Shown: positions 11,277-60,049 of the stretch, in pieces
Layout: each line of letters begins with the position of its first letter
Position numbering within the stretch: the stretch's first letter is position 1
Assembly (NCBI GenBank): GCA_009859145.1
Contig: VRVR01000012.1
Coordinates: forward strand, 248,001-312,000
Source of the DNA: Andalucia godoyi And28
Lineage: Eukaryota > Protista > Jakobida
Direction: 5' to 3'
DNA: 64,000 bases
Made by a program: the position numbers and the translations under genes
Notes under the pieces: generated by a model
What the model saw: only the letters and a program-made list of their open reading frames with translations
The model's database searches: none
Told to the model about the DNA's origin: nothing

Positions 11277-14200
11277 CTAGTCATTCTCGGGGTGTTCAAG
11301 CCCATATGCAGATGAAGAGGACGACGAAACCGCGGTTTCGGTGGAAATGGAGTGCAGAAGGAGTGGTTCGTGAAGATTTCGACGAGCTACCGGGGCTGCG
11401 CGTCGGTGCAAGCGGTTGTGAATAAGGATCTTATACAGGGGCTTCGAGAGGACAAAAAACAAGATCACAGACATGATAAGTAGACTCAGAATGCGAGCGG
11501 TCGAGATGTTCAATGTTTCATCGTCGATACCTCCAAGAACATTGCCGATGGCCACAAGAGCTGCTAGCGAGAAAATCTCAAGGAAATTATCCAGCGACGA
11601 ATGGTACGGACGCGCAAGCGTGCTGATCAGCAATATGCCCAGATTCACAAGATTGACAGAACGGCGACGGAAATCGTGCACAGGGGACGATGAGAATATG
11701 ACAAACACTGAAATCAGAATGATCTTACGAACAAGTACCACAACTTCAAACAGACAGAACCGAGGCTTGTAAATAGCGACAAAGGGGCTCACAAACGGAG
11801 GACTCGCATCTCCGTGAGAAGGAGAAACTGTGTCGTGAACGATGCTCGCTTCGGAAGTTGAGTTTGAAGTTGAAACGTGTTTGGGACCGCCAATCGGCAT
11901 TTGACGCTTCCAAATATACCAGGCAACCGCCAGCGGCCATACGCACACGATAATCAAAAGAATCACAAAAAGGGGCAAGACTGCACGATATTCTGCGCTC
12001 GTGCAATCAATGGAGGGATCAGTTGCGACAACAAAATGAGAATCCACATGATAGCAGTCCAAAAATGAAAAGGATACGCGGGCAAACGTTTGAAAACTCA
12101 GTGTTGCCAGAACTTGCGCAGTCTTCACAAAGGCATCGATGTTGCAGAGACGGCGGAGGAACGTATTAGAACGGACATGCAGGGGAAACAGAAACAACGG
12201 CAACCGCGTGGCTTTGCACACAGTGATGATCCCAAAGGAGAGAGCGAGAAGGGAAAAAAGGAGTAGCGGAAGTAGAGCATCCGTGACCATAACACCAATC
12301 CCAGAGCGAGGATACGGGCATTGGGACGCCGACGGCGAAAATCCCTGAATCGAAATGAGACCATCCCCCTGAAAAAGTACGTTAGGGAAGAACAGAAGCG
12401 CCAGAGTCTGCATGTAATTTCCAAAAATACGAGTTGTTGCGGAAGCTCCTTGCGACCACACATGCTGCAGGAGTACAAACAACCAAGAGAGAACGAGAGC
12501 ACCGAAAATGACAACGCCATTCGCGCTTTCACAGATCATGCAATCACCGTTCCAGGGACTGCATCCATGATCACAGGCGCTACAGAGCACGGACAGCGGA
12601 TCTCGATGCGCTGCACAAACACCGCCATCCAAACAAGCAGTTGGGCTGCAGGCAAACATGTTCACATGTCCGGCATCCTCATAGACATGCGCCCACCACC
12701 CTTGCTTCCAGACCACAGAGTCTGGAAAGCACTCGGCCTGTGAGATCGATGGACACGTATAGCATCCGCCAAACGTCCCGCTCGCAACGTTGTACTCTTG
12801 TCCGGCGATGCAGTTTCGACAAACGAACTGGTCGTAGACATATCCCGTTCCCGCAGGACAACCAACGATACGGACTGTCACATTGGGGCCGTAGCCGTCC
12901 GGAGACAAGGACGGACGAGTCCTTCCCAGCACGCCAAACAGGGTAACAAATTCGGTAGATGGAAACGCCGTTATCGGCACATGCCCTTCGGCGACACCCG
13001 AAGTATTGAAAAACGCTCCCGTGGGGCTATTGATTGGGCAATCCAAGCAACCGTACAAAATTCCGTCCTGATCGATAATCGCGGTGTGATTGAAGGAATC
13101 CTTGACGACAGTTGACAAGAAAAACGAGGGATCTCCCGGATACACAGACAATGAAGATCCCCATGATTCAATGAATGCCGGGCTGGAAGCTACTATTGTA
13201 CCAAAAGATGCAGAGTTGTTATACTCCAACAAGCCGCTGAACGGTGGATGGCAACCAGCGTTCACTGGAAACAACGAAATATACAAGATAGCTCCGCCAA
13301 ATGTCGCGCGATTCTTTGTAAAGATGCAATCACTGCAAAACACAATCGAGCAGTCAAGGTCCGCAAAATCAAATGATGAATAATCAACGCCAAACACAGC
13401 GCCTCCAAATGCAGAGTTGTCTGTGGCGAGCATCCGTTTCACAAGGAGTTGAGACCCCACAGTGGCAACGGCACCCCCAATATTCGAAGCGACTTGACGA
13501 GAAAACCGTACATCCGATGCATTCAACCCAGCACTTAACCTGCCAAGATAAACACCAGCACCATTCAACGCAGCATTGTTCGCAAAGAACGATTCTGAAA
13601 TGCTAACAGATCCGGACAAGACATAAATGGTTCCGTTGCCGGAAATAGCAATGTTGGAAAAGAAACGACACCTCGTGAAGCTCACCCTCCCGTCGAATAC
13701 GTAAACAGCGCTTCCGCCGACAGCAGAGTGTTTCACATTCAAGAATGAAAATTGGGAATCCACCACTTCGACTGTACCACTTTGAATGAATAAAGCCAGT
13801 CCTCTGGCATCTGCGGTTGCATCTGGGGCAGACAAGTTTGTAAATTTGCATCCTGCAAATGTGTGGTCTCCAGAAGAAACAAGGACCCCAACTGCAGAGT
13901 TTCCAGTCGCAGACGAGAACGAGCAGTTCACGAACGTGCTTATGCCAGAATTGAGGACAATGTGGCCAAACGCAGAGACAGAGTAATTCTGAAAGGAAAT
14001 CGAGTCAAACACGGGATTGCCCCTCTGCACGTAGATATTATCCCCCGTCAGCGCTGAATTCTCAAGAAACAAGGAGTTTCTGATTGTCAAAAACTGGCTG
14101 ATGAAAACCGCTCCGCCTTGTCCACCGGCGGAAACAAAGTTCCTAGAGAAAGTGCAATTCGATATTTCAACAGGGAGTGTCGGGGCCCCGAAAGCGGAAG

Positions 14201-15833
14201 AAGCCGAAACGGCCCCTCCTGAACCTCCTGCCGCAATGACTGCGTTGCCGTGCAAGGTTGAATTGAGAAGATGAAGAGCGGCACTGTTCACAGATATGGC
14301 GCCTCCGCCTCCTGATGATGCATCATTCGCCCTGTTATACTGTAACATGCAAGACGTAATCATTGCGAATGCACCAGTTTGCAGGAAAATTGCACCGCCA
14401 GCGGGGGCACTGTTCCCGCTGAACAAGGAACTTCCAAGGATGCGCAAAGTGGAATAGGGTCCAGACAGGAACGCAGCTCCGCCACCCCAAAACTGAGAAA
14501 CTGACCTGCTGAACGATGAAGGTCCAAAAATGCTGATGACTGACAGAGGCCCGGAGAATCCGGACAGCACAAGCAAGGAACCGCCACCTTGCTGCGTATT
14601 GTTGACAGCGCCATTGCCAACAAAATTTGACGCTCCTCTAATGTAGACAGCCCCAGCTTCGACAGCAATTGCACCGCCTCCGCTCGAAAGATTCGACTCA
14701 AAGAGTGCGTGGGAAGAATCAGAAAAGTCACAGGCTCCGCCTGCAACAGCAATGGCTCCGCCAATTCTACCTGCGTTATTGCCGACAAAAGATATTTCAG
14801 ATGCAGAGAAGGACACAGAACTTCCGGTAAACATGAATATTGCGCCTCCAGACTGTCCCGCCGAATTGTCTGCGAAGAGCAATGGCGACTTAAATTGCAA
14901 CCCTCCTCTCTGGATCCAAATTGCGCCTCCGTTCAGGAAAGTGCAGCTCGACGCTCGCGTGGATGCAAGACTATTACGAAGGAAGGTGACGTTTGCGCTG
15001 ACTACCATTTCTGCAAAGAGTGAATCAACATAGAATGCGCCTCCGAGACACGCTGCATTGTCACGGAAGCTGAGAGTCCCATTCGCAGAAAACACAGAAT
15101 CGAAGCTCGTCGAATTGACATATAGAACACCGCCAACTTGGGCAAAATTTCTTGAAAACGAGTTGTTTCCTGTGAACAAGAGAGAGCACGGCTGGCTTCC
15201 GCAATTCAACGACAAGACACCTCCAAATTGAGCAGAACTGCGCCATCCATTCGATGTAAACGACGAATCCTGCACAAACACCGTTGCTGCAGCGTGTTGA
15301 ACCAAAATGACGCTGCCCGCTGTTTGCTGAACATTGACGTTCAGAAAGTACGCACTCGTATTATCACTTCTCATCGCTACGATGCTGTCGAACTGCTGAA
15401 AATCAAGGAACGACAGCGCAATTCGACGGCCGCGGTTCAAAGCAATGAATGGACCGCTGGACAACGACCCATTCAACACAGGAGATACGCCGTTGTCCAA
15501 AGTGCCTATCAAAAGAGAGAGGTCTGGCAGCGGAACCATTGGACTTGCAATCCCGAAAGCGCCTTGGGAGGACAGCAGTACCATTCGAATTGGATTGTTT
15601 CCAGCCGCACGCAAGCACCGTCCAAGCTGCAAGTCACTAAATGCACACGGATCTGAAACATTTGTGCATGGATTAGATGCATCGTTCGCTCCAAAAGCAG
15701 AAAAGTAAAACGTTGCCGTCGGAGAATACACGATCGAAAACGGATTGAACGGATCGAGAGTCTCTGTCGCTGCTGCACATCCCGTGATATGCAAAAACAA
15801 AAGTATAATATAAACAGCCTTCAGCTCACGCAT
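11277..15833 (-). CDS. Large surface protein: signal peptide, Pmp-like parallel beta-helix repeats, Cys-rich stalk, multi-pass TM C-terminus
   Basis: Signal peptide MRELKAVYIILLFLHITGCAAA; many GGA(I/V/L) and FxxN motifs; Cys-rich CPAGTGY...CRNC...CYTC; about 7 or more hydrophobic helices; cytoplasmic tail. Confidence 0.8.
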   Translation of the reverse strand: MRELKAVYIILLFLHITGCAAATETLDPFNPFSIVYSPTATFYFSAFGANDASNPCTNVSDPCAFSDLQLGRCLRAAGNNPIRMVLLSSQGAFGIASPMVPLPDLSLLIGTLDNGVSPVLNGSLSSGPFIALNRGRRIALSFLDFQQFDSIVAMRSDNTSAYFLNVNVQQTAGSVILVQHAAATVFVQDSSFTSNGWRSSAQFGGVLSLNCGSQPCSLLFTGNNSFSRNFAQVGGVLYVNSTSFDSVFSANGTLSFRDNAACLGGAFYVDSLFAEMVVSANVTFLRNSLASTRASSCTFLNGGAIWIQRGGLQFKSPLLFADNSAGQSGGAIFMFTGSSVSFSASEISFVGNNAGRIGGAIAVAGGACDFSDSSHALFESNLSSGGGAIAVEAGAVYIRGASNFVGNGAVNNTQQGGGSLLVLSGFSGPLSVISIFGPSSFSRSVSQFWGGGAAFLSGPYSTLRILGSSLFSGNSAPAGGAIFLQTGAFAMITSCMLQYNRANDASSGGGGAISVNSAALHLLNSTLHGNAVIAAGGSGGAVSASSAFGAPTLPVEISNCTFSRNFVSAGGQGGAVFISQFLTIRNSLFLENSALTGDNIYVQRGNPVFDSISFQNYSVSAFGHIVLNSGISTFVNCSFSSATGNSAVGVLVSSGDHTFAGCKFTNLSAPDATADARGLALFIQSGTVEVVDSQFSFLNVKHSAVGGSAVYVFDGRVSFTRCRFFSNIAISGNGTIYVLSGSVSISESFFANNAALNGAGVYLGRLSAGLNASDVRFSRQVASNIGGAVATVGSQLLVKRMLATDNSAFGGAVFGVDYSSFDFADLDCSIVFCSDCIFTKNRATFGGAILYISLFPVNAGCHPPFSGLLEYNNSASFGTIVASSPAFIESWGSSLSVYPGDPSFFLSTVVKDSFNHTAIIDQDGILYGCLDCPINSPTGAFFNTSGVAEGHVPITAFPSTEFVTLFGVLGRTRPSLSPDGYGPNVTVRIVGCPAGTGYVYDQFVCRNCIAGQEYNVASGTFGGCYTCPSISQAECFPDSVVWKQGWWAHVYEDAGHVNMFACSPTACLDGGVCAAHRDPLSVLCSACDHGCSPWNGDCMICESANGVVIFGALVLSWLFVLLQHVWSQGASATTRIFGNYMQTLALLFFPNVLFQGDGLISIQGFSPSASQCPYPRSGIGVMVTDALLPLLLFSLLALSFGIITVCKATRLPLFLFPLHVRSNTFLRRLCNIDAFVKTAQVLATLSFQTFARVSFSFLDCYHVDSHFVVATDPSIDCTSAEYRAVLPLFVILLIIVCVWPLAVAWYIWKRQMPIGGPKHVSTSNSTSEASIVHDTVSPSHGDASPPFVSPFVAIYKPRFCLFEVVVLVRKIILISVFVIFSSSPVHDFRRRSVNLVNLGILLISTLARPYHSSLDNFLEIFSLAALVAIGNVLGGIDDETLNISTARILSLLIMSVILFFVLSKPLYKILIHNRLHRRAAPVARRNLHEPLLLHSISTETAVSSSSSSAYGLEHPEND

Positions 15834-16270
15834 CAGAGCCCTTGGGAGCACTCCATGAGCCTGAATTGCGTACCTCCAATGAGACTCGATTTCCATAAAA
15901 TGTGCCAACACTGCTCGCAAACGCCTCTCAAATCATTTTCATTGCAGCCTTTTTTTTTTCTTTTTCTTTTTTGAACATGCAGCTTGGCGTTTCATACGGT
16001 CAAAAACAAAATCGGAATATCATCATCACACTACGACTGCAGCCAGTACTCTCTTTGCGATGCACTGGATCCGACACACGGGAAACACCTGTGGCTTCAT
16101 GTGATGCTTACCTCTTCTTATGAATCTTGTTTTTTCTCTCGTTTTTTCCTCTTGTTGTTTTGCCATTTTTCTTTTTTGCCGTTCTTTTATTGTAGTTTTC
16201 TTTTTCGTTTTCCTTGGCGTTGTACTTTTGTGGATTCGCAGATTTATCCTCGTACTGTTCCTTTTCTTTA

Positions 16271-29272: not shown

Positions 29273-30520
29273 ATGTTCCGTCGATTTTTGAGTTCTGCTG
29301 TGCACTCTGGATCTCCGCGCACATTGGGAGAGGTTTCCAATTTTCCCGGCGCAAAGGCACCTTTTACACACGATCTCTCGTTTTTGAAGGGAAATGATCC
29401 GCTGCCTGTTTTCCGAATTCTGAGTGCAAATGGTGAAGTGCTAAACCCAGCTTACGATCCCAAGCTAACCGATGAGCATGCAGTTAAGCTGATGGAAGGC
29501 ATGGTTCGCTTGAATACGCTGGACATGATTCTGTACAATGCGCAACGACAAGGCCGAATTTCGTTCTACATGACCAATACGGGAGAAGAAGCTGTCCAGT
29601 TTGGATCCTCCACTGTGCTGCATCCAGAAGATGAGATATTTGCGCAATATCGCGAGGCTGGAGTCCTGTTGGAGAGAGGCTTCTCTTTGCAAGAATTGAT
29701 GGCACAGTGCTTTGGATCGTACAAGGACAATGGAAAAGGCCGCCAGATGCCGGTCCACTATGGATCAAAGAAACTTCACTTCCAGACCATCTCGTCTCCT
29801 CTTGGAACCCAGATTCCACAAGCGGCAGGGGCTGGGTATGCCATGAAGTTGCTTGGCAAACCGAACGTCGTCATGTGCTACTTTGGAGACGGCGCCGCTT
29901 CTGAAGGTGATTTCCATGCGGCTCTGAATTTTGCTGCAACGCTTGAATGCCCCACTGTGTTTTTCTGCAGAAACAATGGATATGCTATCTCTACCCCAAC
30001 ATCCGATCAGTATCGAGGCGACGGAATTGTGGCCAGAGGACTGGGATATGGAATTCATTCTGTTCGGGTTGATGGAAATGACTTGCTTGCTGTCATCGCG
30101 TGCACGAAAGCTGCACGTGAACTTGCAGTTGAAAAGAAAGCCCCTGTGTTGATCGAAGCGATGACGTACCGTGGAGGCCACCACTCCACGTCGGATGATT
30201 CCACACGCTATCGTTCGGAAGCCGAATTGAACTACTGGAACCGGGAGCAGAATCCGATTGCACGTTTCCGACACTATCTTTTCGGCCGCAAGCTGTGGAC
30301 GGAAGATCGCGAGAAGGAGTTGCAGTTGCAGGTTCGAAAGCAGGTTCTGGCCGAGCTGGACGCTGCAGAAAAAGATCCAAAGCCTGCCATTGAACAACTG
30401 TTTGAAGATGTCTACGAAAGCATGCCGTGGCATCTTCAAGAGCAGAAGCAGGAGATGTTAGCGCATGTTCGCAAGTATGCGAAAGATTACAAACTAGAGG
30501 AATTTGCAAAGAATGTTTAG
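29273..30520 (+). CDS. BCKDHA: Branched-chain 2-oxoacid dehydrogenase E1 alpha, mitochondrial
   Basis: QRQGRISFYMT, GRQMPVHYGS, TPP-binding YFGDGAASEGDFHAALNFA...CRNNGYAISTP, HHSTSDDS; presequence-like MFRRFLSS. Confidence 0.95.
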   Translation: MFRRFLSSAVHSGSPRTLGEVSNFPGAKAPFTHDLSFLKGNDPLPVFRILSANGEVLNPAYDPKLTDEHAVKLMEGMVRLNTLDMILYNAQRQGRISFYMTNTGEEAVQFGSSTVLHPEDEIFAQYREAGVLLERGFSLQELMAQCFGSYKDNGKGRQMPVHYGSKKLHFQTISSPLGTQIPQAAGAGYAMKLLGKPNVVMCYFGDGAASEGDFHAALNFAATLECPTVFFCRNNGYAISTPTSDQYRGDGIVARGLGYGIHSVRVDGNDLLAVIACTKAARELAVEKKAPVLIEAMTYRGGHHSTSDDSTRYRSEAELNYWNREQNPIARFRHYLFGRKLWTEDREKELQLQVRKQVLAELDAAEKDPKPAIEQLFEDVYESMPWHLQEQKQEMLAHVRKYAKDYKLEEFAKNV

Positions 30521-36156: not shown

Positions 36157-36446
36157 GCCACCACAGGAGACAGTGCACTGTCGGTACTCTCCTTGCCGCA
36201 AGACGATTTTGCCATGCAGCATATAAAATTAGGGCCGCTCTTGGCATTGACAATTAGCAGCGAGCTCTTGCAGTGTCCACTTGAGGGGTGAAGGCGGGTT
36301 GATGCTGAAAAAAAATCGACAAAACGAGAGGTTTCGCCTCGCCGAAAAGAAATGCATATCACGACTCAGAAAGACGAAACGAGAAGGAAGCAGCGCCGTT
36401 TCGACCATTCATCATATAGAAGAAATACGCGGTTGAAATTTGAGGA

Positions 36447-36788
36447 ATGGTGTTGTCGCTGAAACTTCTTGTCCGACTGCCTGAGGATTCGTTGAACGTT
36501 AACTTTGGGCTGTTTCTGTCGCGCGTTGTTCCGTACCTAGTTCGGAACGGCAAGTCTGGAGCTGTGCAAGTGGAAAAGGTTTCCAGACCATTTGAGAGAT
36601 ATCCTGGTGTCGTTTACCAGTGGGAAACGTTGACGGGTGCCTGTTCTGAACCGCAATTTGTGGATGTCGCCAAGATATCTCCTCAAGAGTCTTACCGTTT
36701 GTTTAAGGACATGCTGGCAGAAAAGCAGGTGTGGGATGTTGAAAATGAAAGTGTTCCTCTAGCACCAGAAGAACACGACAAAAAATAA
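36447..36788 (+). CDS. Small hypothetical protein (113 aa)
   Basis: ATG-initiated ORF filling the gap between divergent and convergent genes; protein-like composition; no family recognised. Confidence 0.5.
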   Translation: MVLSLKLLVRLPEDSLNVNFGLFLSRVVPYLVRNGKSGAVQVEKVSRPFERYPGVVYQWETLTGACSEPQFVDVAKISPQESYRLFKDMLAEKQVWDVENESVPLAPEEHDKK

Positions 36789-36861: not shown

Positions 36862-36937
36862 GAATCACCCTTTTCCTTGTCAGAAAGCGAGGGAGGTCTG
36901 TGCCCTTTTCTCTCGCAATCGTCATGAGAATGGATTC
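36862..36937 (-). promoter_or_regulatory. Eukaryotic SECIS element in the 3' UTR of the DsbA gene
   Basis: Minus strand gaatccattctc-AUGAC-GAUUGCGAG-AGAAAA-GGGCACAGACCUCC-CUCGCUUUC-UGAC-aaggaaaagggugauuc: AUGAN/NGAN core, 9-bp helix II (with two U.U), unpaired A run, apical ministem. Confidence 0.8.
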
Positions 36938-37087
36938 AATGTCTTATCGAACGAAGAATTCCTTCTTTTTTTCCCTTTCTTTCTTTCCTTCCTTTTTTCC
37001 CTTTCTTTTCCAGGAAAGTCAATAATAATAAGAAGAATAAGAATAATCTCACAGAAAGAAGCATAGTGACAGGCAGCGCATGGTTTG

Positions 37088-37738
37088 CTATTGGTCATCC
37101 TCGATTTGCTCAAAAACGCTCAGAAACACACGTTCTGGCTGCGCTCCACTTAACATGTATTTTTCATTAAACACAAATGAAGGGACACCAGAAACCCTGT
37201 ACCTCATTTTAGACATCTTATCCAATTCAAAAACATGCACCTTGAGCCCATCATCTGCAAGAGCCGCCAGAACAGCGTCCGCGGAAATTCCTATTTCTGC
37301 GCCACACTTCACCAATACATCTTCGGTGGATATATCTTCTCCACGACCAAAATAAGCTTGGAATAAACGTTCTTGAAGCTCATTCTGTTTCGAAATGGAG
37401 TGGTTCCTCAAGACATATTCAGAAAGCTGGTGCGCACGAACAGTGGACGGGATCCTGGGACAAAAGTTGAACATAACTCCGGCTGCCTTTCCAGCGTCAA
37501 TCAGCCGAGACTCTATCTTTTTCCAAGCAGACAGATCAGACCCGAATTTGTTTCGGATGTAAGTATCGCGGTCCGTCCCATCGGAAGGCATTTGAGGGTT
37601 GAGCATGAACGGCATCCACCGAACTTCAAGTGTGAACCGATCGGAAACCAGCTTCAGTGCATTCTCGAGATGTCGCTTCCCAACCCAGCACCAAGGTCAG
37701 GCGATGTCACTGATGACCGTAACAGAGACTTTAATCAT
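37088..37738 (-). CDS. FrnE/DsbA-family thiol-disulfide oxidoreductase selenoprotein (UxxC; Sec TGA at 37699-37697); 216 aa
   Basis: ATG 37738: MIKVSVTVISDIA-TGA-PWCWVGKRHLENAL...RWMPFMLNP...VSGVPSFVFNEKYMLSGAQP. TGA aligns to the first Cys of the FrnE CPWC motif; true stop is TAG; SECIS lies downstream. Confidence 0.9.
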
Positions 37739-37899
37739 CGCCAATAAGATGAGATATGTTGAATAAGGGGAAAAAACAAAGGGAAAAAAAGATGAAGACG
37801 AAGAATCACGAGTGTGCCCAGCAAGTTGGGTGCCGCTGGATAATAACACGTCATTGTCGTGTGAACGGAAGGAAGTATACATAACCAGACACGGTCGAC

Positions 37900-38647: not shown

Positions 38648-39922
38648 ATGATTTTTCATGGATTAAAGAAGAAGGAAAATGCGTCAGTTCCAAAGGGGCT
38701 GTATATGTTTGAAAGTGCGGAATTGGCAGTCGCCGAACGGTGGTCGCATGCAAAGAAACCGAAGCTGCAAAGCACTGAGAATTCTCGAGAGCCAGCGAAA
38801 TCAGAATGGACGGATACAGCACTTCCACTTTCCAATCTTTGCCTTGGGAAGGAATCATCGTTTCGAAGGCCCTGGAAAATCCCATCGCTTATTGGCCTGT
38901 TTCCGTTCTACCGTTTTTCCATATCCGCCGGTATTCCCACGACGGTAGCCCCGGATGATCACGAGCAACGTCTTTTTCATGAGAAGAAGCTGTACAAACT
39001 GCTGTTTGAGGTGTCTGAAAGGTTGGTCCGAGATCATGTGTCACAGGTGGTGAGGAAGTGTGTTGATGAGTGTCGGCAACCGAAAGTCCATCCTGGTTGT
39101 CTATCTTCTTTGACAAACTTGTCTGAATCTTCGTTTCTGTCGAATTTGCTGAGCTTTTCTCGCCTTTTGTGTCCGGAGCTTTCAATCGAGTTTACGATTC
39201 ATGCGAAACGTGATGTGGAGTTCGCGTTCGGTCGCGGCGACCCCGCTTGCATCGTGGTTGAAACGAATGCTTCAGCCGAAATCTGCAAACGTGATTTTGC
39301 AACTGTGAAGTCTTGCAATTGGTTAAATGATGAGATGGTCAACGGATTCATGAACGCCCTTGCAGTCACCTTCTCACCTCATAGATTCATGTATTTTAAT
39401 ACGTTTTTCGGTGCGAAATTGCTGGACAAAGGAAAATATGACTATTCAAACGTGGCATCTTGGACGAGGAGACTTTCTCGAAAGGTGCATCGTACAGATA
39501 TTGATAATGTTTTTCAGTTGAGACGTCTTTTTGTCCCTTTGCATGAAGCTGATCGGGCCCATTGGACGTTGGCCGTCATTGATCTGGAGAAAGAAAAGTT
39601 CGTCTACATGGATTCTCTTGCATCATCCCGGTTTCCTCGAATGCTTGTTGCCCTAAGGCAATGGCTGAAGGATGAGTATTCCTCAAAGTCCCCGGGCCGT
39701 GTCTTCTCGAATGCTATCGAGTCCTGGCCGATGACCAGGTTGATCGAACGCCCCATCCAGCACAACGCTTACGATTGTGGAGCGTTCACTTGCTATATGG
39801 CGCTTGTCATGTCTGGTGATTCTGATTTGTCTGTAATTGCTCAAAAATGGATGTCAGATTTTCGTGTTTTTATTGCTGCGTGCATATTGTCTGTTGGCGT
39901 CACGCGAAGAGGCAACAGGTGA
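38648..39922 (+). CDS. Ulp1/SENP-family SUMO protease (peptidase C48)
   Basis: WLNDEMVN, FNTFF, FVPLH...HWTLAVID (His), YMDSL (Asp), QHNAYDCGAF (Gln/Cys). Confidence 0.9.
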   Translation: MIFHGLKKKENASVPKGLYMFESAELAVAERWSHAKKPKLQSTENSREPAKSEWTDTALPLSNLCLGKESSFRRPWKIPSLIGLFPFYRFSISAGIPTTVAPDDHEQRLFHEKKLYKLLFEVSERLVRDHVSQVVRKCVDECRQPKVHPGCLSSLTNLSESSFLSNLLSFSRLLCPELSIEFTIHAKRDVEFAFGRGDPACIVVETNASAEICKRDFATVKSCNWLNDEMVNGFMNALAVTFSPHRFMYFNTFFGAKLLDKGKYDYSNVASWTRRLSRKVHRTDIDNVFQLRRLFVPLHEADRAHWTLAVIDLEKEKFVYMDSLASSRFPRMLVALRQWLKDEYSSKSPGRVFSNAIESWPMTRLIERPIQHNAYDCGAFTCYMALVMSGDSDLSVIAQKWMSDFRVFIAACILSVGVTRRGNR

Positions 39923-42822: not shown

Positions 42823-42894
42823 AGGGCTGAGGCGGAATTGAACCACCGACCTCTTGATCTGCAGTCAAATGCTCTACCACTGAGCTACCAGCCC
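42823..42894 (-). tRNA. tRNA-Cys (GCA)
   Basis: GGGCTGGTAGCTCAGTGGTAGAGCATTTGACTGCAGATCAAGAGGTCGGTGGTTCAATTCCGCCTCAGCCCT; cloverleaf, anticodon GCA, discriminator U. Confidence 0.95.
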
Positions 42895-45640: not shown

Positions 45641-45713
45641 GGGCGTATAGTTCAGTTGGTAGAATATATCCTTCGCAAGGATGAGGTCCCGGGTTCGATT
45701 CCCGGTGCGTCCA
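45641..45713 (+). tRNA. tRNA-Ala (CGC)
   Basis: Cloverleaf, anticodon CGC, G3:U70 alanine identity pair, discriminator A, T-run terminator downstream. Confidence 0.95.
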
Positions 45714-45893: not shown

Positions 45894-47150
45894 ATGTCTT
45901 TTCAGAAAGTATGCAAAGTTTCAAAGCTCAAAATCGGAGCTATGAAAGCATTCGAGATTGTCGGGTCTGCTGGCAAAGCCATAGAAGTTTTACTGCATCG
46001 CCAATCCGAACACGTCTTTCTAGCGGTTAGTAACTGGTGTCCACACAAGCAGGCGTCTCTCGCAAAAGGGGACATTGAAGATATCCCAGATTTTGGCCTC
46101 TGTGTAAAGTGTCCGAAGCACAGGAAGAAATTCTCTGGCGGCCTGTGTTTTCGATTGTCCGATGGTGCTTCGTATGTTGCCGCACCGTGCGAATTGTATC
46201 GAGACACATATGCCATTCCCACCTTTTCTGTTCGATTACAGAACGAACATGTGTGGGTTTCACCGAATCCTGCCGCGCCACCTCTTAAAGTTGCCAATTC
46301 TTCATCCGACCCATCTGTGCCTCTAGAGGGCTTGCCGACTTCTCCGCTTACCAGCGACCCCGAGTCGTTTATAGAATCTTCCGTACATTTGCTGAGGAGG
46401 GTAAATCATAATACAGTTGCCATTTCTGTGACTGTTCCCACGGATTATATTTCCAGTGGTCTGTGCGCCGCACTGCACGCTGAGCCGCCCGCTTGGCATG
46501 TTTCTGTCCGTCTGCCAGAGTTTCCACACATTGTCAGGGATTACACGCCCACCTCGACGTGGAAGCAATGTTTGTCCGACAGAACTATTGATTTGCTTAT
46601 CAAGAAGTATCAAGAAGGCGAATTTACATCTGTGTTGGAGAGGCATGCGAAGGAGGGTACCACACTTCTCGTTTCTCCTCCGCAAGTCACGGTTCATACC
46701 CTTTTGCAGCGGAAGCTTCTACTCCTTGGCGGCGGAACTGGAATTGTTCCGTTGTATCAAATTGTGAGGAGGGTTCTCTCAGACGACAATTTCCAAGACC
46801 ATGCGGTATCAGTCATTGTTTCCCAACGGACTCGAGAAGATCTTCTTTTGTGGGATGAGCTGCTCGATCTACAACAAAAACATTCCGGCAGATTGCGAAT
46901 ATTTGCGTGCTTGTCCGACACCACCAGAAATTCATCTTCGGATGAGCTGCTTCAGAACGGAGTGTCATTCCATTCCGGACGGATTTCGTCGCAATTAATC
47001 TCATGGAGCATGGAATTTTTGGACGTCTCTCAGGATGACGGTGCGCAGGCAGTGAAATGCGTCATTTGCGGTCCAAGTGGGTTTTTGGATCATGCGGAAT
47101 CCCTCGTGTCCGCAGTGGGAATCAGCGATCCTCTGATTCTTGATGCATAA
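45894..47150 (+). CDS. Rieske [2Fe-2S] domain fused to FAD/NAD(P)H cytochrome-b5-reductase-like (FNR) module
   Basis: CPH...GDIEDI...CPKH Rieske ligands; RDYTP (RxYT/S FAD motif), GEFTSVL, GGGTGIVP, CGPSGF. Confidence 0.85.
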   Translation: MSFQKVCKVSKLKIGAMKAFEIVGSAGKAIEVLLHRQSEHVFLAVSNWCPHKQASLAKGDIEDIPDFGLCVKCPKHRKKFSGGLCFRLSDGASYVAAPCELYRDTYAIPTFSVRLQNEHVWVSPNPAAPPLKVANSSSDPSVPLEGLPTSPLTSDPESFIESSVHLLRRVNHNTVAISVTVPTDYISSGLCAALHAEPPAWHVSVRLPEFPHIVRDYTPTSTWKQCLSDRTIDLLIKKYQEGEFTSVLERHAKEGTTLLVSPPQVTVHTLLQRKLLLLGGGTGIVPLYQIVRRVLSDDNFQDHAVSVIVSQRTREDLLLWDELLDLQQKHSGRLRIFACLSDTTRNSSSDELLQNGVSFHSGRISSQLISWSMEFLDVSQDDGAQAVKCVICGPSGFLDHAESLVSAVGISDPLILDA

Positions 47151-49000: not shown

Positions 49001-49180
49001 CAGAGCTTCCAAAAAACCTGAAAAAACCCCGCTTTCCCTCCGATTTTCAAATTCGTGGGGCACTGCTTATTGTAAAATTATATTTTTTTTTGAGCGTTTT
49101 TTTTTGTTGCTGCACCATGGATGATTTGATTTTTATTGTTTCTAGCCCCAGCCTCTTCCGATCCAAGACGTAGCCTTTCG

Positions 49181-50782
49181 ATGAATACTCCACCAAGAAC
49201 ACCATCCTATGATGATCGCTTCATGGGCCGCATTGACAACGCGTCCTTTCATGCCCCCTTGAGTCCACAGTCTTTGTATGTTCGACCTTCTCCCACTACC
49301 CCAACAACTCCTGCTACCCCGACTGCTCGGGTTTCGCAGCAACCGACAGTCCCAGGTGCAAACAATGAAAATGATCATTACGAAGCATTGCTGAGGACTA
49401 CTGTGTTGAATGCTGCAGACGGTGTATTTTCTTATACCCCGGCTAATCTGGTGGCCTCGCCGTTCCGTGAGCGCTCCTCTGGCGGAGACGCCAGTTCGTC
49501 GTCGCGACTTCTAGCTAGACCATCGCAATTATCTCCTTCTCGTCGCATACCAACGCATCCTGCTAAAGTTTTGGATGCCCCGGCGCTCGCGGATGATTTT
49601 TATCTGTCCCTGATTGACTGGGGCGCAACAAACGTTCTTGCGGTTGGGCTCAATAGCGAAGTTTACCTATGGAATGCTTCGAATGCCAAGGTTACCAAAC
49701 TGTTTAAGGATTCTCAGCCGGTATGTTCCGTAGTGTGGTCACCTTGCGGAAACTACCTTGCGTTTTCTGACAATGATGGACACGTGTCCATTGTCGATGT
49801 TGCCACGCAATCGCGAGTTCACAAATTTAAAGAGCATTCTGGCCGTGTCGGGTGCATGTCCTGGCATGGTACTGTCCTGGCTACTGGCTCAAGAGATTGC
49901 ACTGTCAAAGTAGTGGATACCAGAATGCGGCAGTTGGTTCGCTCGTGGGCTAATCATCAGCAAGAAGTATGTGGCCTTGCTTGGTCCCACTGTGGACGAT
50001 ATCTTGCATGCGGTGGTAATGATAACAAGTTGATGGTCTGGGCTGCAAATCATGATTCCACAACCCCGCTCCACCTCTTTACAGACCACACGTCTGCTGT
50101 TCGTGGCCTGGCATGGTCTCCTCATTCGCACGGCCTTTTAGCCTCAGGCGGCGGATCGCAAGACAGATGCATCCGGATTTGGAACGTGAAGCATGCATCA
50201 TCTTCGTCATTGCAAGGACACGTTGACACGGGTTCTCAAGTGTGCGCATTGGCTTGGGCTCATAATGTCGACGAAATTGTGTCGACGCATGGATTTTCGC
50301 AGTATTCCGTCAATCTGTGGAAAGTGAATTCATCACCGTTCGGTTCTGCAAACGCTTCCTCTTTTGGCACCATTTCAATGCCAGTAGGATCTCCTGTACG
50401 TTCCCCACTGAATCAGTCTCCGTCAGGCTCGCCTTCTCATTGGCCCGTTCGGCCCCAGCCCATCTCCGTTCCAGAAAGCCGTGCGTTCACTGCATCGTTG
50501 GATTCTTCCTCTCGGTCTTTGCAATCGCAGGAAATACTGACTCCGATCGCAAGCATTTTTGGTCATACTACCCGTGTTCTGTATTTGACAATGTCTCCAG
50601 ACGGCGAAACAATTTGCACTGGCGCTGGTGACGAAACTCTCCGGTTCTGGAATGTATTCCCTCCGAAAAAGAAGGCCCACCCAGCATCTCCGTATGCAAA
50701 GCTGTATTCTCCACTCTCTTCAGGCGGACCCTACGGTAGCCCCCGGTCGCCGTTGTGGATGCCTTCAACGGAGTTTCGCTGA
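49181..50782 (+). CDS. Cdc20/Fizzy-family APC/C activator, Cdh1(FZR)-like WD40
   Basis: KVLDAPALADDFYLSLIDWG, GGNDNKL, LLASGGGSQDRCIRIWN, DTGSQVC, GHTTRVLYLTMSPDGETICTGAGDETLRFWNVF. Confidence 0.9.
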   Translation: MNTPPRTPSYDDRFMGRIDNASFHAPLSPQSLYVRPSPTTPTTPATPTARVSQQPTVPGANNENDHYEALLRTTVLNAADGVFSYTPANLVASPFRERSSGGDASSSSRLLARPSQLSPSRRIPTHPAKVLDAPALADDFYLSLIDWGATNVLAVGLNSEVYLWNASNAKVTKLFKDSQPVCSVVWSPCGNYLAFSDNDGHVSIVDVATQSRVHKFKEHSGRVGCMSWHGTVLATGSRDCTVKVVDTRMRQLVRSWANHQQEVCGLAWSHCGRYLACGGNDNKLMVWAANHDSTTPLHLFTDHTSAVRGLAWSPHSHGLLASGGGSQDRCIRIWNVKHASSSSLQGHVDTGSQVCALAWAHNVDEIVSTHGFSQYSVNLWKVNSSPFGSANASSFGTISMPVGSPVRSPLNQSPSGSPSHWPVRPQPISVPESRAFTASLDSSSRSLQSQEILTPIASIFGHTTRVLYLTMSPDGETICTGAGDETLRFWNVFPPKKKAHPASPYAKLYSPLSSGGPYGSPRSPLWMPSTEFR

Positions 50783-59988: not shown

Positions 59989-60030
<42 letters not shown>

Positions 60031-60049
60031 CACACACAGACACACACAA
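59989..60049 (+). repeat. (AT)n(AC)n microsatellite immediately upstream of the OPA3 ATG
   Basis: tatatatatatatatatatatatacacacacacacagacacacacagacacaca. Confidence 0.9.

Follow-up and report, generated by a model that had tools for sequence, protein, structure and literature searches.

A 64-kb stretch of contig VRVR01000012.1 of the jakobid Andalucia godoyi (hereafter the window; its position 1 is record position 248,001) carries what is very likely a functional nuclear gene for a selenocysteine (Sec)-encoding enzyme of the DsbA/FrnE type, in which the catalytic cysteine has very probably been replaced by selenocysteine at an in-frame TGA. The gene lies at approximately 285,088-285,738 of the record on the complement strand, and the features of its coding region, in window coordinates and as predicted from the sequence and its homologues, are the following.

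37088..37738, minus strand: predicted complete coding sequence of a Sec-containing DsbA/FrnE-like oxidoreductase, with the ATG at 37738-37736, 216 codons and the TAG at 37090-37088.
37697..37699, minus strand: in-frame TGA at codon 14, the proposed selenocysteine codon, opposite the first Cys of CPWC.
37688..37699, minus strand: redox motif U-P-W-C (TGA CCT TGG TGC), located by alignment to FrnE and homologues.

Read on the minus strand from 37738 to 37088, the locus forms a single 216-codon reading frame whose sole interruption is the TGA at codon 14 (37699..37697). The initial annotation had described two open reading frames that are in truth one frame joined by a single TGA, and both pieces were found in the list of minus-strand open reading frames exactly so: a 61-aa piece at 37697..37882 ending ...VTVISDIA, and a 175-aa piece at 37088..37615 starting MPFML, which share the same frame (37882-37615 = 267 = 89x3). 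Translation of 37741..37088 on the minus strand gives A-MIKVSVTVISDIA*PWCWVGKRHLENALK...EQIEDDQ*, containing one internal stop, in agreement with the single TGA that had been claimed, and the translation can also be written as MIKVSVTVISDIA*PWCWVGKRHLENALKLVSDRFTLEVRWMPFML...EQIEDDQ*, with PWCWVGKRHLENALKLVSDRFTLEVRWMPFML following directly after the TGA.

With codon 14 translated as Cys, the protein matched the Pfam DSBA profile (PF01323) with E=1.4e-27, its 97 bits exceeding the cut-off of 25.6, and the match takes in residues 6-206 of the protein and positions 2-187 of the 191 in the profile; a match that continues through the TGA in this way cannot be chance. By this full-length profile match the product is a member of the DSBA-like thioredoxin domain family, in the FrnE/DsbA-oxidoreductase subgroup. 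The best match among solved structures was FrnE of Deinococcus radiodurans (PDB 5CNW and 5CP1; E=1.5e-26, residues 3-212); SCO1869 (3GL5) also matched, with E=1.7e-17, and the nearly full-length matches to PF01323 and FrnE bear out the earlier observation that family-like sequence continues downstream of the TGA.

The FrnE motif SDIACPWCYIGKRRFE aligns with SDIA-U-PWCWVGKRHLE of the A. godoyi protein, and the TGA stands opposite the nucleophilic Cys that opens the CPWC motif of FrnE and of every Cys-form homologue, bacterial or eukaryotic, where the initial annotation had placed it. Across an 11-sequence alignment, the P, W and C of U-P-W-C are invariant, with the TGA at the first motif position, and so are V185 and P186 of the GVP loop, G184 being nearly so. 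By homology, the U-P-W-C motif would sit at the start of the active-site helix, after the first beta strand, and P186 would be the cis-proline facing the active site. FrnE differs from the A. godoyi protein in having Cys at the position of the predicted Sec and in its length, its 260 residues including a C-terminal extension that the 216-residue A. godoyi protein lacks; some bacterial homologues (P0003 among them) have a Cys-containing tail, ...SCAVDDPNC, which is absent from the A. godoyi protein. The best full-length database matches are DsbA/FrnE proteins of the bacterial type at ~41% identity, while the labelled eukaryotic Cys-forms are 31-38% identical to the A. godoyi protein.

Because the homology is collinear and ungapped across the TGA, the stop finds no explanation in an intron, in keeping with the initial annotation, which had needed no intron signals, and an intron taking out the TGA would necessarily take out the active site too. 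No ATG occurs in the 27 codons that separate the TGA from Met42, and this stretch (PWCWVGKRHLENAL...) is, in the alignment, the best-conserved region of the family; translation must therefore enter from upstream and cross the TGA. If instead the downstream open reading frame alone were translated from Met42 (MPFML..., 175 aa), with the upstream piece serving as 5' UTR, the product would be the one that plain ORF and gene callers give, and many relatives in protein libraries have been called likewise. However, such a product would be without the N-terminal strand and the entire redox motif, while the 41 upstream codons are conserved as protein in all homologues and the Pfam profile matches from its position 2, so that we consider a start at Met42 highly improbable.

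The TGA occurs at the homologous codon in four other homologues, 33-48% identical, of which one comes from JGI metagenome 3300042922 (L001) and three from Logan assemblies (L083, from SRR13727538, L084 and L085), bringing the total to five independent assemblies with A. godoyi included. L001 reads MAAKKIPVSISIVSDIV-TGA-PWCPVGYLRLQRAL..., L083 begins c-TGA-CCA-TGG-TGT in frame with its called ORF, L084 reads ...LSVLVISDTI-TGA-PWCLVGQVRLE with the TGA at 238-240, and L085 reads ...VVSDNI-TGA-PWCFVGKRNLE with the TGA at 425-427. The codons flanking the TGA differ synonymously among the homologues (AGT/AGC, GAC/GAT, CCT/CCA/CCC/CCG and TGC/TGT), which indicates that purifying selection acts through the TGA. 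Were the TGA an error of sequencing or assembly at a true TGC or TGT codon, the same error would have to recur at the homologous codon in five assemblies from different projects; taken with the synonymous flanks and the divergence of the sequences, this excludes both a faulty assembly and a nonsense mutation private to A. godoyi, and we give a miscalled base practically no credence.

The same comparison bears on the possibility that the locus is a pseudogene or has suffered a recent nonsense mutation at the active-site codon, since an in-frame stop so early (codon 14) would ordinarily leave no protein and since a copy of the public assembly has no gene on record for this stretch. Against this, the four homologues share the TGA at such low identity with frames that are otherwise intact, all 216 codons of the A. 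godoyi gene are intact with the family residues kept, including the GVP cis-Pro loop, a SECIS-like element lies downstream, and the TGA is kept across a clade with 85-88% bootstrap support, which makes decay of the gene very unlikely.

The organisms behind the homologues can be narrowed in part. L084 adjoins a FAM91 gene and is therefore eukaryotic, and L001 and L084 likely come from relatives of A. godoyi, because the L084 sequencing run and the L001 sample series also hold BCKDHA sequences that are 74% and 75% identical, respectively, to the BCKDHA of the A. godoyi window.

29273-30520: BCKDH E1-alpha (BCKDHA), a gene on record.

These homologues also bear on where translation starts. An upstream in-frame ATG is present at 37882, and the stretch between it and the proposed start is a pyrimidine tract without homology; a long pyrimidine tract (37745-37800 in the minus-strand reading) lies just upstream of the start codon. 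In L001, a stop lies a few codons upstream of its start, favouring a short N-terminus. Given the tract without homology and this stop, a longer N-terminus beginning at the ATG at 37882 appears unlikely, although less firmly so in view of L084 and L085, the frames of which are open upstream of the start.

Word-indexed protein searches returned bacterial-type Cys-forms only, at <=41% identity, besides two short fragments (P0039 and P0241), for which their contigs, L001 and L083 with the in-frame TGA, supply the explanation. A metagenome DNA scan that demanded a Cys codon at the Sec position likewise gave bacterial Cys-forms alone. When 1.84 billion representative proteins were searched exhaustively with a profile, 7,148 relatives were returned. 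Approximately half of the 30 top relatives fetched (P0359-P0411) start right after the UxxC site, for example with MGKRNLE... or MGQVRLERAL..., and both of the shortened calls that were checked on DNA (L084 and L085) are cut at an in-frame TGA. It therefore seems that gene calling in metagenomes systematically cuts Sec-DsbA genes short.

Decoding of UGA as selenocysteine in a eukaryotic gene would call for a SECIS element in the 3' UTR, and the initial annotation had stated that one follows the gene. The unconstrained minimum free energy (MFE) fold and a fold-based filter both gave a form-2 SECIS-like element there, on which Rfam was silent.

36867..36935, minus strand: candidate form-2 SECIS in the 3' UTR, from the unconstrained MFE fold of 36936..36866, starting 163 nt after the stop.
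36961..37010, minus strand: all-purine tract of 50 nt that separates the stop codon from the SECIS within the 3' UTR, a low-complexity spacer to which we assign no role.

In this fold, helix I pairs 36935-36927 with 36876-36867 through AUCC/GGGU and UUCU/GGAA, and the core consists of AUGA (36925-36922) in an internal loop opposite UGAC, with the 3' GA at 36881-36880. Helix II comprises ~9 bp with two U-U mismatches, and an unpaired AAAA (36909-36906), 12 nt after the AUGA, is followed by a 3-bp mini-stem and a 7-nt loop. The element is the sole candidate that the fold-based filter returned in the 299-nt 3' UTR. The SECIS-like element of L001 has its AUGA 51 nt beyond the stop, a spacing of 12 nt from there to GAAA, as in A. 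godoyi, a 4-bp mini-stem and a 3' GA, and that of L084 has AUGA ~120 nt after the stop, an 11-bp helix II closing on the 3' GA and a larger, branched apex.

A loose SECIS descriptor matched six sites on both strands of the window, as compared with 4.5 +/- 1.9 in dinucleotide shuffles (128 kb), and its expected chance rate is ~0.01 per 300-nt UTR on the correct strand. SECIS-like elements in three UTRs, two found by the descriptor and the third by folding, are well beyond chance. Two further minus-strand matches of the descriptor were rejected as chance, the total of six being within the shuffle expectation: one at 37167, inside the coding sequence, and one at 36415, ~670 nt downstream, the AA of which lies inside a perfect CGAAACG/CGTTTCG helix.

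By its MFE, the A. godoyi SECIS region does not stand out from shuffled sequence (z = -0.45), and the support for the element therefore lies in its motif and architecture, not in its stability. Run on the entire window, Rfam reported no SECIS at its gathering threshold, nor did it report one at E<=10 on short stretches of A. godoyi (the 300-nt UTR), L001 and L084, where it gave only chance matches to purine tracts; the tract at 36961..37010 is the cause of such weak spurious matches. Animal sequences predominate in the eukaryotic SECIS seed of Rfam. In L083, the contig of which ends 331 nt after the stop, no SECIS was detected even with relaxed cores and spacing, and MAFFT did not align the elements of A. 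godoyi and L001 in register.

Two observations concern the DNA around the 3' UTR. A 113-aa ORF on the plus strand (36447-36788), without a Pfam match, converges on the DsbA gene and, if real, would leave ~300 nt for the DsbA 3' UTR, with the SECIS in the middle of the gap. Homopurine and homopyrimidine tracts such as those at 36961-37010 and 37745-37800 may typify the intergenic DNA of this genome.

Bacterial SECIS elements take a different position, as a hairpin within the coding sequence just after the UGA. Folds of the 70 nt from the UGA in A. godoyi, L001 and L083 gave no conserved hairpin (z = +0.21, -1.41 and -0.84, respectively), so the SECIS is not of the bacterial type.

The UGA might also be decoded in another way, either by near-cognate read-through with Trp, Cys or Arg or by insertion of Cys via the Sec pathway under scarce selenium, and the failure of Rfam to recognise the SECIS would be in keeping with this. 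Nevertheless, the 3' UTRs of three clade members hold SECIS-like elements, the position is that of the catalytic nucleophile, where exchange of Sec and Cys is the rule in known selenoproteins (PMC2874816), and the Sec trait is present in other Discoba, the kinetoplastids and Naegleria (PMC4561486). We therefore regard decoding as an amino acid other than selenocysteine as improbable. A change of the genetic code had been discounted from the start on the grounds that other genes use TGA as an ordinary stop, and this use is seen in the Ulp1-type protease and the CDC20 homologue of the window.

38648-39922: Ulp1-type protease, which ends in TGA, its Pfam domain stopping just before.
49136-50782: CDC20 homologue, which ends in TGA, its Pfam domain stopping just before.

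Several neighbouring genes end in TGA straight after their domains in this way, from which it follows that TGA is a normal stop in this genome.

The neighbourhood is plainly eukaryotic, with genes for the Ulp1 protease, a NAD-dependent epimerase-family protein, CDC20, CDT1, an eIF4G-like MIF4G/MA3 protein, MBOAT, an APC5-like protein and CCCH zinc fingers. The gene-dense window fits the compact, intron-poor genome of A. godoyi, which measures ~20 Mb (accession VRVR00000000; PMC7050145). The tRNA genes within the 64-kb window are two, and neither is a tRNA-Sec.

42823-42894, minus strand: tRNA-Cys(GCA).
45641-45713, plus strand: tRNA-Ala(CGC).

Three other ORFs of the window have features worth recording. 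An ORF of 1547 aa on the minus strand (11277-15920) has no Pfam match at E<=1e-4, contains many motifs of the GGA[IVL] type (GGAIFM, GGAIAV, GGAIFL, GGAISV and GGAVFI) that recall polymorphic-membrane-protein or autotransporter-like repeats, and has several hydrophobic, possibly membrane-spanning segments in its C-terminal region; it may encode a large surface protein. In an ORF on the plus strand (45894-47150), a Rieske [2Fe-2S] domain at the N-terminus is joined to oxidoreductase domains that bind FAD and NAD, which is uncommon within a single chain. The start of an ORF at ~59990-60045 on the minus strand reads VCLCVSVCVCVYIYIYIY, which derives from (TG)n/(TA)n microsatellite DNA, and the true start of this gene is probably a downstream Met.

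The initial annotation had expected automated annotation to truncate the gene, which appears not to hold for the A. godoyi record: the copy of the public assembly lists no gene there, and neither the 175-aa product nor the Ulp1 neighbour appears in it, so the DsbA gene appears to be unannotated rather than truncated. Across 21 kb (window 19273-40520) the copy lists BCKDHA alone as a gene, though the DNA is densely coding, and the public A. godoyi assembly appears to be sparsely annotated as a whole. The genome paper and its supplements (PMC7050145) make no mention of a selenoprotein, SECIS or DsbA.

We placed the protein among its relatives with a neighbour-joining tree (BLOSUM62 distances, 100 bootstraps), in which the A. 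godoyi protein forms a clade with L001 and L083 at 88% bootstrap support, or at 85% with L084 added. This Sec clade stands apart from the labelled bacteria, with the deeper branches of the tree unresolved. A test of bacterial origin by phylogeny had been suggested beforehand, and in this tree the clade is not nested in the labelled bacteria. That a Sec-DsbA was recently acquired from bacteria by horizontal transfer, or that the contig is contaminated with bacterial DNA, would agree with the best full-length matches being bacterial-type DsbA/FrnE proteins, closer than the labelled eukaryotic Cys-forms. On the other hand, the gene is surrounded by eukaryotic genes on a 406-kb contig (406,542 bp), which excludes contamination, the bacterial SECIS site just after the UGA is without a conserved hairpin while a eukaryote-type SECIS lies in the 3' UTR, and the Sec clade does not fall within the labelled bacteria of the tree, as far as its branches resolve. 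Taken together, these points leave a recent bacterial source with little probability.

A wider and more doubtful reading, which we put forward only tentatively, is that the gene and its clade would give a first indication of UGA being read as selenocysteine in jakobids, that an early ancestor of the eukaryotes already had a Sec-containing FrnE-type DsbA, which many times over was lost or turned into the Cys form, and that protists have a SECIS variant missed by current curated RNA models. The separation of the four-member Sec clade from the labelled bacteria would fit such an early ancestor, as would the presence of Sec-DsbA in both green algae and chordates.

Returning to the gene as a functional Sec-encoding one, we propose that translation of the mRNA begins at the ATG at 37738 and that the ribosome, on reaching the UGA at codon 14, would insert selenocysteine instead of terminating, directed by the form-2 SECIS stem-loop in the 3' UTR. 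By analogy with known eukaryotic selenoprotein synthesis, SBP2 would bind the AUGA/GA kink-turn and recruit eEFSec and Sec-tRNA(Sec) to UGA-14. The predicted product is a 216-residue thiol-disulfide oxidoreductase of the DsbA/FrnE type, and at its U-P-W-C centre a selenolate would replace the nucleophilic N-terminal Cys of CxxC and could form a selenenylsulfide with Cys17. Its N-terminus leads straight into the first beta strand with no detectable signal peptide, for which reason the protein is probably cytosolic, like FrnE. The reading frame, the homology through the TGA, the conservation of the TGA and the SECIS-like structures are shown here, and the insertion of selenocysteine and the machinery for it, as well as the location and substrates of the enzyme, are inferred.

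Sec-DsbA has already been described in marine bacteria, Micromonas, Ciona intestinalis, C. savignyi and Branchiostoma floridae (PMC2874816), and it occurs in Micromonas pusilla and many other algae (PMC2874816; PMC7539508). Like the A. godoyi protein, the eukaryotic forms have a DSBA-like thioredoxin domain with Sec in place of the first Cys of CxxC near the N-terminus, and a SECIS in the 3' UTR, which is of form 2 in both Ciona species. Such eukaryotic genes are routinely mis-annotated, the part with Sec being taken for UTR (PMC2874816; PMC7539508), and this happened to the Sec exon of the Ciona and Branchiostoma genes (PMC2874816). In contrast to the algal and chordate forms, the A. godoyi protein belongs to a jakobid (Discoba); in the tree, it forms a clade of its own with its three closest relatives. 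Bacterial Sec-DsbA-like proteins have been recorded in the Sargasso Sea/GOS metagenomes and an Olavius symbiont (cited in PMC2874816); they are members of this superfamily too, with Sec likewise at the first position of UxxC, but carry their SECIS hairpin in the coding sequence just after the UGA, whereas the A. godoyi gene has no conserved hairpin there and its signal lies in the 3' UTR. A literature search of incomplete coverage returned no selenoprotein report for Andalucia, Reclinomonas or other jakobids, and the Sec-DsbA of A. godoyi is apparently the first to be recorded for this group.

The kind of selenoprotein is thus already known, and the gene implies no new mechanism. Its recognition corrects the annotation of a phylogenetically important protist, from whose public record a real gene is missing, and the same error of gene calling, with a start placed just after UxxC, affects many relatives in metagenome protein libraries. 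For the jakobids, the gene would serve as a marker of the Sec-decoding trait, and it contributes one more record to the patchy picture of where protists use selenium and to the question of the age of eukaryotic Sec-DsbA.
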